Translations under genes and position numbers: made by a program
The notes under the pieces: model-generated
What the model saw: only the letters and a program-made list of their open reading frames with translations
Told to the model about the DNA's origin: nothing
The model's database searches: none
Shown: positions 28,301 through 30,407 of the stretch, piece by piece
Layout of the letters: the number at the start of each line of letters is the position of its first letter
How positions within the stretch are numbered: the first letter of the stretch is position 1
Assembly (NCBI GenBank): GCA_002269645.1
Contig: NIVC01000073.1
Span: 186,001 to 250,000 of the forward strand
Direction of reading: 5' to 3'
DNA: 64,000 nucleotides
Source: Macrostomum lignano
Lineage: Eukaryota

Positions 28301-30407
28301 AGATCCAGTCAGATAAATACCGTCTGATACTCATCAAGTAGATCCTGTCAGATAAATACCCTCTGACACTCTTCAAGCAGATCCAGTCAGATAAATACCC
28401 TCTGACACTCCTCAAGCAGATCCAGTCAGATAAATACCCTCTGACACTCATCAAGCAGATCCAGTCAGATGAATACCCCCTGACACTCATCAAGCAGATC
28501 CAGTCAGATAAATACCCTCTGACACTCATCAAGCAGATCCAGTCAGATAAATACCCTCTGACACTCATCAAGCAGATCCAGTCAGATAAATACCCTCTGA
28601 CACTCATCAAGCAGATCCTGTCAGATGAATACCCCAGAGACCGAGAAACGCTACAATTCAAGGCACTCACTGAGCGCAGACTTCCAAGCTGGAATTCCCA
28701 TTCCAAGAAGCTGATGAGGCAGCGGCTGGGGCGGCTGCTGCTGCTGCAACAGATGAGACCACAGCTGCATCGGATGCTGATGAGGTGGATGCAGCAGCAC
28801 GCTCTGCTGCTCCTGCTGATGCTCTTTTGCAACAATCCACGGCGGCAGTGCTTGCAACAGGTGAGAATATTGCTGCAATTGCAACAATTGCTGCTCGTGT
28901 TGCTGCTGTGTGTGTGTGTGTGTGTGTCTTCGGCTGGGCGGGTTCCCTCATTGCACCCACTCAGGGTGCGTGCACTTCAGGAACCCTAGCACCTTCGCTT
29001 CATCTCCCAGATCCTCCAGACCTTGAATACCAAAACGCGCCCTCTCCTTATGCCACCTGTCGCACCACACCCAGTGGTCCTTGTCCTCTTCCTCACCGCA
29101 GTCCTGACAACTCGCCTTTGCCTCAGCACCGATTTTTTGTCGCCAGTAGGCCGTCTTCTTGCATTGACCACATCTGAGTTGGGCGAGTGTGGTCTCCGTG
29201 CTACGATTTTCAGCGCATTTGTTAATTTTGTGCTTGTAGACCCTACGGAGACGCTCATCAGAGGGCGGGGGCGCCGGCTCCTTCCTGATGGCCGCCTTTA
29301 CACAGTTCCACATGACGGGGACGTCGTCCTGCGGTAGAGCCGCTGCTTCCTTAGCCTCCTGGTCGACATCCTCGTTGCCCGCGACACCAACATGACCGGG
29401 TACCCACTGCAGCACCACTCTGGTAACTTGGCTAATCTCACGGAGTCTACTGATCAGGCGGTACGACGTGGTATCCTGGGTAGCTTTCTCGCTGCTGAGC
29501 TTGAGGAGGGCCGATTTACAGTCCGTCAGGATGATGGCATTTCGCGGCTTGGCCTCCGCAATGGTATCCAGTGCCAGCTCCAGGGCTCGCTCCTCCGCAA
29601 CCAGGGAGCTGCACCACTCCCCGGCCGCCGCTTTCTTGACGCGTCTCTCCGTGTCAAAGTACACGACACAAGCTGCACCACCCTTACGCTGCCCTTCTCC
29701 AACAGACCCATCCGTGTAGATTGACAAATCGAATTTGCCCCAGGCGTTAATGGTGTCGATCGTCTCTGTGGCGAGGTTGCTGTCACCCTTCTTTCCTCCG
29801 CGAATAAGCTCCGTAGCGATCACGACGCCGTCCATATGTAGCCGTCTCCACGGCGGGTGTCTCTTTCTGGTGAAGCCCTCTCTGGGGTGGGTCGACCTCC
29901 TCAGGCATTCCTCTCTGGCCTGATCCCTCCACCCTTTGTTCGCCTGAAGTCTGCGGTTTCCGGTTCTTTCACTACACTCCCTGAGCGGGTCTCCCTCTGG
30001 GGCTCTGGTGGCCTTTTCCCAGGCCAGCATCGCCCTTTTGCGCGCTTGATAACGGATCGGCTCGATATTAGTCTCCACGTACACCGCTTCAATGGGGGTG
30101 GAACGCACCAGTCCCGCAGCTAGACGGAGACATTCTCTCTGAGCACGTTCGAGTTTTTCAAAGCTAGTGCTGGACAGCCAGGGGAGCCACGCTGGGGCGC
30201 AGTACCAGATACAACTCTCAACAATACTTTTGTAGATCAACAGGAGTTCCTCGGTCCTCCAGCCCCAGCTGGTATTAGCCAGGACACGGATAGCTCACCG
30301 TGTTGCTGCTGTTGCTGTTGCTGCTGCTGAAGTGGACTTATCATAGGGCCGTTGCAACTGGCAGAATTTTTGCCAAGAATATCCGAGATACTGAATGGGG
30401 TGGCCAT
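22302..30407 (-). CDS. Nkx6: NK6-class homeobox transcription factor, exon 1 interrupted by a LINE fragment
   Basis: Homeodomain [47 protein letters not shown]|[14 protein letters not shown]; N-terminal TN/eh1 motif [10 protein letters not shown]. Segments 30407-30299 plus 28895-28671, then 27844-27579 and 22688-22302, with compatible GT-AG phases. Confidence 0.95.
22800..23670. repeat. 15-bp minisatellite (GGCGCCAGCACCAGA)n with a degenerate GGCTTTAGCACCAGG arm
   Basis: Seen directly, in the last Nkx6 intron. Confidence 0.97.
24293..25258. repeat. (GATA)n microsatellite
   Basis: ~960 bp near-perfect run. Confidence 0.99.
26045..26490. repeat. 14-bp minisatellite (GGGAGCGCCAGTGA)n
   Basis: Seen directly. 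Confidence 0.95.
27240..27563. repeat. (TAAC)n microsatellite
   Basis: Starts ~15 nt inside the Nkx6 intron after the donor at 27578. Confidence 0.98.
28240..28635. repeat. 39-bp intronic minisatellite
   Basis: Unit CAGATCCAGTCAGATAAATACCCTCTGACACTCATCAAG, about 10 copies. Confidence 0.93.
28910..30298 (-). mobile_element. 5'-truncated I-group-like LINE (RT thumb, RNase H, C-terminal Cys/His motif)
   Basis: Intact ORF 28948-30240 with YTDGS, AEE, LTDC, WVPGHVG..GNEDVD and CQDC...H...C. 3' stem-loop GCACCC-TGAGT-GGGTGC, (CA)n tail, and an exact 14-bp TSD CGTGTTGCTGCTGT (28896-28909, 30299-30312). Confidence 0.93.

Follow-up and report, generated by a model that had tools for sequence, protein, structure and literature searches.

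One copy of the nerve-patterning gene Nkx6 of the polyploid flatworm Macrostomum lignano is interrupted, within its first coding exon, by a fragment of a LINE, and the account that in our judgement very probably holds is that of a very recent, 5′-truncated insertion, dead on arrival, which left a newborn null or leaky gene copy that is tolerated through redundancy. The features on which the argument rests are given below; coordinates are those of the window, i.e. the whole 64-kb stretch of DNA that was analysed, and a slash marks a splice boundary.

30299..30407, minus strand: Nkx6 exon 1a, which runs from the ATG (30407) up to the insert and ends in phase 1; the same as in the NIVC01004289.1 copy
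30299..30312, minus strand: 5′ copy of the target-site duplication, ACAGCAGCAACACG
28910..30298, minus strand: LINE fragment (non-LTR, 5′-truncated, sense orientation, 1389 bp), missing from NIVC01004289.1
30297..30298, minus strand: GT of the candidate donor motif ACG/GTGAGC at the junction
28948..30294, minus strand: open LINE ORF fragment, 448 codons (30294-28951) plus a TGA stop (28950-28948)
30237..30239, minus strand: TGA at which the Nkx6 frame would first terminate in a message that retains the insert
28947-28928, minus strand: LINE 3′UTR, 20 nt
28907..28927, minus strand: LINE tail, (AC)10A, the last 3 nt of which are shared with the duplication
28896..28909, minus strand: 3′ copy of the target-site duplication
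28851..28852, minus strand: AG of the frame-restoring candidate acceptor first proposed, ttgcaAG/CA, exon start 28850
28671..28895, minus strand: Nkx6 exon 1b, to the native donor TCA/GTGAGT, phase 1; 0 substitutions relative to NIVC01004289.1
27579..27844, minus strand: Nkx6 exon 2, with the N-terminal 46 residues of the homeodomain; acceptor tttttttacag/AC, donor AAG/GTGAGT
22302..22688, minus strand: Nkx6 exon 3, to the stop codon; 8 substitutions and a 6-bp in-frame indel relative to NIVC01004289.1

The fragment was found where the original prediction had placed it, flanked by two copies of ACAGCAGCAACACG (30312-30299 and 28909-28896), both on the minus strand, which are exactly the two occurrences of this sequence in the window; by chance about 0.01 matches would be expected, and two or more copies were seen in 0 of 100 shuffles. 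The duplication had been put at exactly 14 bp. The flanking repeat is indeed an exact one of that length, but since the tail overlaps its first 3 nt, the duplication itself is to be read as 11-14 bp. The (CA)n tail was likewise found as described, following the short 3′UTR. Together with 5′ truncation and the lack of LTRs and TIRs, the target-site duplication and the simple-repeat tail at the 3′ end make up the full set of hallmarks of such an insertion, and the fragment integrated via target-primed reverse transcription: its (CA)n tail meets the ACA of the target, the duplication measures 11-14 bp and the 5′ end is truncated. When the insert and one repeat copy are deleted, the reading frame is continuous, as had been claimed, and the same empty site exists at a second M. 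lignano locus.

The host gene was correctly named as Nkx6, as seen from a homeodomain split between exons 2 and 3 and from best matches to Nkx6/NK6 proteins. Exon 2 covers positions 1-46 of the Pfam homeodomain profile PF00046 (E = 1.6e-10), and the match of exon 3 to positions 45-57 is weaker (E = 0.0016, 18.7 bits, under the 22.9-bit cut-off). Among the best 120 protein matches, M. lignano's own set aside, nearly all of the named ones are Nkx-6.1/6.2/6.3, NK6 or HGTX, with an identity of 58-90% (mostly 70-90%) across the homeodomain region. The product of exon 1a comprises an eh1-like FSISDIL motif at residues 5-11, read as eh1/TN from the sequence and not from a profile search, and a polyglutamine run; eh1/TN motifs, of the general form FxIxxIL, bind Groucho. 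The LINE landed in the CAG/CAA-rich, polyglutamine-coding stretch of this exon.

The insert begins just past the catalytic domain of the reverse transcriptase and encodes the C-terminal end of the reverse transcriptase region, an RNase H domain (Pfam RNase_H, E = 1.9e-14, at ~29727-29341) and a Cys/His tail. Its ORF had been called intact, which is right in that the frame stays open over 448 codons but does not extend to the element as a whole, for the endonuclease and most of the reverse transcriptase are missing; without these, the copy is immobile on its own. In the 90%-clustered protein collection, we found four homologues, all distant (34-42% identity) and from sources other than Macrostomum. 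The fragment is colinear with relatives P0121 and P0126 (RVT_1 and RNase_H) and L002 (Exo_endo_phos_2); APE, RVT_1 and RNase_H are found in the relatives, which have a short 3′UTR followed by a (CAA)n tail. The four distant relatives are informative on domain order and tail type, and not on dating at the nucleotide level. By these features, the family is classed as an APE-type non-LTR retrotransposon with RNase H and a microsatellite tail. A HMMER search of representative proteins revealed one other genic copy, P0125, which is identical to our fragment at 100% of amino acids over 434 aa and lies within an APC-like gene model. The search of the clustered collection had overlooked P0125, although it is itself a cluster representative, and negatives from that search are therefore weak. 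With the APC-like part of P0125 as query, no M. lignano entries were among the matches. Neither blastn nor tblastn revealed further copies of the LINE in the 64-kb window or in the NIVC01004289.1 sequence, and an Rfam scan of the whole window gave no matches.

The second locus, NIVC01004289.1, has a precise empty site in an intact Nkx6 gene of 326 aa (protein PAA47926.1, named Mlig018135g2; a literature search for papers on the gene identifier Mlig018135 found none). Once the insert is excluded, exons 1 and 2 are identical between the LINE-bearing and the intact copies, and no other disabling mutation was seen in the coding sequence of the former when it was compared to the latter. Around the insertion, the flanks differ by 3 mismatches in ~6.6 kb of non-repeat sequence (0.05%), whereas 3′ of ~26.9 kb there are 217 mismatches in ~11.8 kb (~1.8%), i.e. 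a divergence of the subgenome level; this contrast indicates that the insertion is much younger than the genome duplication. Its youth is also apparent from the 448-codon open frame and from the complete protein identity with P0125. For a dN/dS comparison of the two Nkx6 copies, the 8 substitutions, all in the low-complexity exon 3, are too small a number to be informative; the exon-3 differences are at CDS positions 687-693, 713-714, 736, 739, 890, 930 and 966. M. lignano is a neopolyploid with three subgenomes, which in the DV1 line differ by 1.4-2.4% (PMC10733133), and 180 Mb of the Mlig_3_7 assembly lie in duplicated blocks (PMC5730564). The existence of an intact, nearly identical copy argues for an ordinary gene-copy knockout rather than for the birth of an intron. 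A null allele or paralogue had been offered as one of two outcomes, and this one is supported by the neopolyploidy, the intact empty-site copy, the extreme recency of the event and the predicted truncation of the product to 56 aa. For the other outcome, a gene rescued by a new intron, nothing was found in support beyond the donor motif. That the LINE-bearing copy persists would be due to the redundancy of Nkx6 in this neopolyploid and to the very short time for which the copy has been exposed to selection.

How the two copies are related bears on what kind of variant the insertion is: the window and NIVC01004289.1 may represent two alleles or two homeologues between which a tract was converted, or the assemblies may be chimeric in part. 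We regard it as possible, if somewhat doubtful, that they are two alleles of one locus, in which case the sequenced culture would carry the insertion as a presence/absence polymorphism, either segregating or of recent origin, and the divergent 3′ part would stem from a chimeric contig or from residual heterozygosity. A divergence of 0.05% over the 13 kb that span the insertion fits this, as does its sharp rise, close to the (CTAA)81 array (27239-27563) and ~26.9 kb, to 1-3%, but the same pattern is explained by a gene-conversion tract between homeologues, and the tandem arrays are of unequal length in the two sequences. Paralogues are misrepresented in the published assembly, and the large chromosome, present in two copies, was unexpectedly heterozygous; against this, DV1 is highly inbred and its within-subgenome heterozygosity was estimated to be negligible (PMC10733133).

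What would a message from the interrupted copy encode? If the insert is retained, the Nkx6 frame does not meet a TGA immediately, as had been stated, but runs on for 20 more codons; the TGA at the junction, cGG TGA GCT, belongs to the LINE frame. The predicted read-through product is a 56-aa peptide with the eh1 motif, the polyglutamine run and 20 junk residues. Exact look-ups of the restored protein, of two internal-Met forms, of this peptide and of the LINE ORF gave no match. If the insert is instead spliced, the outcome depends on the sites available. The phase-1 donor, ACG/GTGAGC, is present exactly at the junction as first described, and its GTGAGC is as good as the GTGAGT of the gene's two native donors. 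It had, however, been taken as the first bases of the insert, and its T is probably not LINE sequence: P0125 reads ...KRRVR/AIRVL (here the slash marks the position compared), with an Arg where the window copy has TGA, and the Arg in a protein otherwise 100% identical suggests that the GT is a product of the junction and not a feature of the LINE family. From this protein comparison, the GT was probably added as filler without a template or came about by a C>T change, and is not master LINE sequence. The motif would then have been formed by chance, as target ACG, then GT, then the GAGC of the LINE.

On the acceptor side, five AGs (CAG, CAG, GAG, CAG and CAG, with exon starts at 28905, 28902, 28893, 28890 and 28872) lie between the LINE tail and the AAG acceptor at 28851. 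Those in and adjoining the target-site duplication are out of frame, as already noted in the original prediction, and with the junction donor any of the five would give a frameshift and a predicted product of 108-119 aa without homeodomain. The proposed acceptor does restore the frame at the cost of 15 aa, but it is a distal AAG with those five out-of-frame AGs nearer to the tail. It is the nearest in-frame AG, 45 nt beyond the target-site duplication; an A at acceptor position -3 is disfavoured. Upstream of it, the pyrimidine content is 0.67; the two native acceptors have values of 0.61 and 0.78. Acceptors in frame with the junction donor were found at exon starts 28850, 28823 and 28688. If the junction donor is used at all, its most probable partner is a nearby CAG; the frame would then be shifted and end at a stop in exon 2, so that the LINE-bearing copy would be null or at best leaky. 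A weak phase-0 donor, TCC/GTGTCC, is in frame with all five CAG/GAG acceptors, and in total 8 donor-acceptor combinations retain the homeodomain in frame, so that a fraction of the mRNA may be functional. The 15 aa that would be lost belong to a lineage-specific Q/L-rich region, the non-Macrostomum matches listed covering 21-37% of the query; being lineage-specific and little covered by outside matches, they might well be dispensable.

Could the LINE then be removed as a new spliceosomal intron of ~1.45 kb, leaving a functional Nkx6 shorter by ~15 aa? We hold this to be very improbable. It would find a consensus-like phase-1 donor exactly at the junction, three in-frame acceptors and a second, weak donor compatible with the five closer ones, yet for the junction donor all of these closer AGs are out of frame, and two of the three in-frame acceptors are AAG, the one first proposed among them, while the third (28688) is a distal CAG. 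That the residues to be lost are not conserved beyond Macrostomum and that the remainder of the gene is undamaged would agree with a rescued gene, but the latter is equally accounted for by the extreme youth of the insertion, and with an intact copy present no rescue is necessary. Introns derived from transposable elements, non-LTR ones included, are on record (PMC12130899, PMC11282704); the sole other known genic copy of our LINE, the one in P0125, is nevertheless treated as part of the coding sequence in its gene model and not as an intron. Two forms of the predicted spliced protein had no exact match in the protein collection, which is weak evidence on splicing. That the insertion is absent from the germline genome, and is due to misassembly, to chimerism of a long read or to a somatic event, is scarcely credible: the M. 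lignano genome is known to be hard to assemble (PMC10733133, PMC5730564), but the precise duplication, the microsatellite tail, the 5′ truncation and the exact paralogous empty site are the signature of real retrotransposition, and an assembly artefact was rejected on the basis of the duplication, the tail and the empty site.

The preferred reading, a fresh knockout of one redundant copy, has several counterparts in known systems. With exon insertions of L1 in mammals and of I/jockey-type elements in insects, the case shares the duplication, the 3′ repeat tail, the 5′ truncation, possible extra nucleotides at the 5′ junction and a premature stop in the interrupted coding frame. It differs from them by a (CA)n tail in place of poly(A) and by its host, a neopolyploid flatworm that has the gene in two or three near-identical copies, by which the mutation is probably buffered. 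Like introners and other introns derived from transposable elements (PMC9860276, PMC12130899, PMC11282704), it combines an exonic element, flanks formed by a duplication and a consensus-like donor at one boundary; non-LTR retrotransposons make up ~5% of the classified introner families (PMC12130899). But an introner has splice sites at or next to both element ends and its excision restores the frame, while here there is a donor only, at the 5′ junction, with no in-frame acceptor at the other boundary, the GT of the donor probably does not come from the element, and the case appears to be a single event and not one of a family of homologous introns. Should the LINE after all be removed in frame, this would offer a rare direct view of LINE-derived intron gain in an animal; the present evidence does not suggest it. 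The disabling of one redundant copy by a transposable element is also what is seen in gene fractionation after whole-genome duplication, here at a very early stage with one lesion only in the coding sequence. Indels of such kind dominate the differences between the M. lignano subgenomes (PMC10733133), and the locus provides a clean and datable case in which transposable elements begin to erode redundant copies of genes shortly after the genome of this species was duplicated. In practical terms, one Nkx6 copy is probably non-functional, which bears on the design of knock-out and knock-down experiments and on the reading of copy-specific expression in M. lignano.

The APE-type non-LTR retrotransposons that target microsatellites, Waldo (ACAY), Mino (AC) and Dong (TAA) (PMC3812793), provide a last comparison. 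They have in common with our element a microsatellite tail, which is (CA)n here and (CAA)n in its relatives, and the tail shares ACA with the target; the target, however, is a coding CAG/CAA tract and not a pure microsatellite. In a weaker variant of the intron-birth reading, the LINE family may home to CAG/CAA repeats that code for polyglutamine, and so recurrently strike the coding exons of Q-rich regulators; if true, such homing would be raw material for intron gain or for gene-copy loss in a neopolyploid. Both copies of the LINE (2/2, from the only two insertions known) adjoin CAG/CAA (polyQ) sequence.

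On its minus strand the window carries a gene whose three exons were read from the sequence:

30407 to 28671, minus strand: exon 1, from its ATG (30407) to the donor TCA/GTGAGT, first intron base 28670
27844-27579, minus strand: exon 2, with the acceptor tttttttacag/AC and the donor AAG/GTGAGT
22688-22302, minus strand: exon 3

When the LINE insert in exon 1 and one copy of its target-site duplication are conceptually taken out, the restored protein has 328 aa, with an eh1-like motif (FSISDIL) at its N-terminus and a homeodomain (Pfam PF00046) encoded jointly by exons 2 and 3. 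Nearly all of its named best matches are Nkx-6.1/6.2/6.3, NK6 or HGTX proteins, from animals at large, with 58-90% identity (mostly 70-90%) across the homeodomain, and on sequence similarity the gene is assigned to Nkx6 as an orthologue. The top protein match is PAA47926.1 (BOX15_Mlig018135g2, 326 aa), from Macrostomum lignano itself, which matches the restored protein at every residue encoded by exons 1 and 2. It is encoded at L001, a second locus collinear with the window, on contig NIVC01004289.1 of the same assembly (GCA_002269645.1). Across the insertion site L001 reads ...CAACAGCAGCAACACGAGCAGCAATTG..., an exact empty site in which the duplicated 14-mer is found once only. The proposal of a LINE insertion with target-site duplication is thus borne out independently of the low-complexity context.

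In the window, ACAGCAGCAACACG is present exactly twice, at 30312-30299 and 28909-28896 (about 0.01 matches expected by chance), and the 1389 bp between the two copies hold a LINE oriented like the gene:

30294-28951, minus strand: open frame of 448 codons with an RNase H domain, stop codon at 28950-28948
20 nt, minus strand: 3′UTR
28927-28907, minus strand: (AC)10A tail

Three bases at the start of the ACAGCAGCAACACG repeat are shared with the tail, so the target-site duplication is of 11-14 bp. Protein searches found relatives at 34-42% identity, with the domain order endonuclease (Exo_endo_phos_2), RVT_1, RNase_H and a Cys/His tail, and with a comparably short UTR followed by (CAA)n. Aligned to them, the window LINE starts just past the RT catalytic domain; it is thus a 5′-truncated copy, non-autonomous, of a non-LTR retrotransposon of APE type with RNase H.

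Its protein is 100% identical over 434 residues to part of P0125 (UniRef A0A1I8JA23), an M. lignano APC-like armadillo protein model with relatives named adenomatous polyposis coli. The same LINE is embedded there in coding sequence (residues ~590-1309, followed by QQQQ; compare window 28951-30294), and the model exits it via an internal donor, AAG/GTGCTA. CAG/CAA repeats adjoin both of the two genic copies, and ACA is common to the target and the (CA)n tail of the window copy. In its CAG/CAA-adjacent sites and (CA)n tail the element is similar to Waldo (ACAY) and Mino (AC), APE-type LINEs that target microsatellites (PMC3812793). The two copies together suggest that the family was active recently and may favour targets of CAG/CAA, i.e. 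polyQ-coding, sequence; such a preference, a lead from two copies only, would, if true, account for its landing in coding exons.

Divergence between the window and L001 was counted outside tandem arrays. From 26.9 kb to 40.15 kb of the window, a segment that includes the insertion, there are 3 differences in ~6.6 kb (0.05%), against 217 per ~11.8 kb (1.8%) from 12 kb to 26.9 kb, the point of change being near a (CTAA)81 array 3′ of exon 2. Exons 1 and 2 do not differ between the two copies, and exon 3 differs by 8 substitutions and a 6-bp in-frame indel. In the inbred DV1 line, three subgenomes diverge by a published 1.4-2.4% in SNPs, a range that the 1.8% figure fits, and their large differences are mostly indels (PMC10733133). 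Together, the contrast between flank and subgenome-level divergence and the identity of the LINE to P0125 argue that the insertion is far younger than the genome duplication. The window and L001 could be two alleles, or homeologues that a recent conversion or recombination tract has joined, or contigs that are partly chimeric; misrepresented paralogues are on record in this assembly (PMC10733133), and duplicated blocks total 180 Mb (PMC5730564). The switch itself is abrupt, at ~26900 (between 28205 and 26884; ~11.8-12.1 kb in L001), beside the array at 27239-27563, with 0.05% divergence over 13 kb on its 5′ side and 1-3% on its 3′ side, where one 1-kb bin reaches 5.9%. A gene-conversion or recombination tract is a possible cause, or the assembly may be chimeric where it crosses a long microsatellite.

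As to the message, the original prediction held that unspliced mRNA would stop immediately. This has to be corrected: the Nkx6 frame runs 20 codons into the LINE, to a TGA at 30239-30237, and the TGA at the junction belongs to the LINE frame. The predicted phase-1 donor ACG/GTGAGC, at the border of the 5′ duplication copy and the LINE, is present and close to both native GTGAGT donors. The window reads cGG TGA GCT ATC... here, with TGA where the LINE protein in P0125 has Arg. Arg codons start with C or A, so the T of the junction GT should not be master sequence; judged at the protein level, this GT would be either filler added without a template at the 5′ junction, or the result of a C-to-T change. 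The donor would thus be a composite of target ACG, junction GT and LINE GAGC, and not something that the LINE family carries as such.

Only three exon starts are in frame with this donor:

28850: AAG, the acceptor originally proposed, with loss of 15 aa
28823: AAG, with loss of 24 aa
28688: CAG, with loss of 69 aa

The proposed acceptor does restore the frame, but it is distal: five AGs lie nearer, 3′ of the LINE tail (exon starts 28905, 28902, 28893, 28890 and 28872), and each, joined to the junction donor, is predicted to give a frameshifted product of 108-119 aa that ends in exon 2 and lacks the homeodomain. The +1 frame of exon 1b (28667-28960, minus strand) is open and Ala/Ser-rich, a by-product of its CAG/CAA/GCA repeat composition, so that frameshifted products reach exon 2 before the stop (QQPDV, then stop). 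A weak phase-0 donor absent from the original account, TCC/GTGTCC, 11 nt inside the LINE, would keep the frame when joined to any of the five proximal AGs, with GELS inserted.

Read most simply, the insertion has just turned this Nkx6 copy into a null, or a leaky one. An intact copy in this neopolyploid would explain why the disruption is tolerated, and the insertion would be a first step in TE-driven erosion of duplicates; TEs are the chief source of subgenome differences in M. lignano (PMC10733133). That the LINE is instead spliced out as a new intron, rescuing Nkx6, we consider very improbable. Such rescue is possible on paper, but it requires that a distal AAG be preferred to five AGs closer by, or that a weak donor win over a strong neighbour; from what is generally known of splice-site choice, frameshifting junctions should dominate, if the junction donor is used at all. 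Intron birth is known, from introners, including ~5% non-LTR-derived families (PMC12130899), and from single TE-derived introns (PMC11282704), so that this case, even if true, would be a new instance and not a new principle.

Look-ups in a 15-billion-protein collection returned none of the restored protein, two spliced variants, internal-Met forms, the read-through peptide and the LINE ORF, and no mention of Mlig018135 was found in the literature. These negatives are weak and call for caution, because the word-indexed protein search also missed P0125 with LINE and APC-like queries, though P0125 is a cluster representative there.

Tandem arrays are exceptionally dense along the whole window: ~27 score at least 200 (e.g. 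18416-20135, 24295-25258, 32480-34276 and 45271-47117), among them (GATA)241, (AGTC)462, (CTAT)141, 39-bp x44 and 32-bp x56. Several lie within Nkx6 introns, one beginning ~15 bp past the exon-2 donor, and their lengths are unequal between the window and L001. Elsewhere in the window are:

1811-2557 and 7090-7680, minus strand: C2H2 zinc-finger exons (Pfam zf-C2H2, zf-H2C2_2), probably of one neighbouring gene
47435-48061, plus strand: Cys-loop ligand-gated ion channel exon (Neur_chan_LBD and Neur_chan_memb)
44671-45261 and 48218-48667: possible further ion channel exons
58351-61840, minus strand: gene for a large Ig-domain protein, with several I-set immunoglobulin exons and a long Ser/Ala/Thr-rich ORF (58956-60929)
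38937-39545, plus strand: weak mariner-type transposase match (Transposase_1, under the curated cut-off), likely an old transposon remnant
13412-17194, minus strand: run of long ORFs free of Pfam matches, by eye like a decayed retroelement, likewise a likely old transposon remnant
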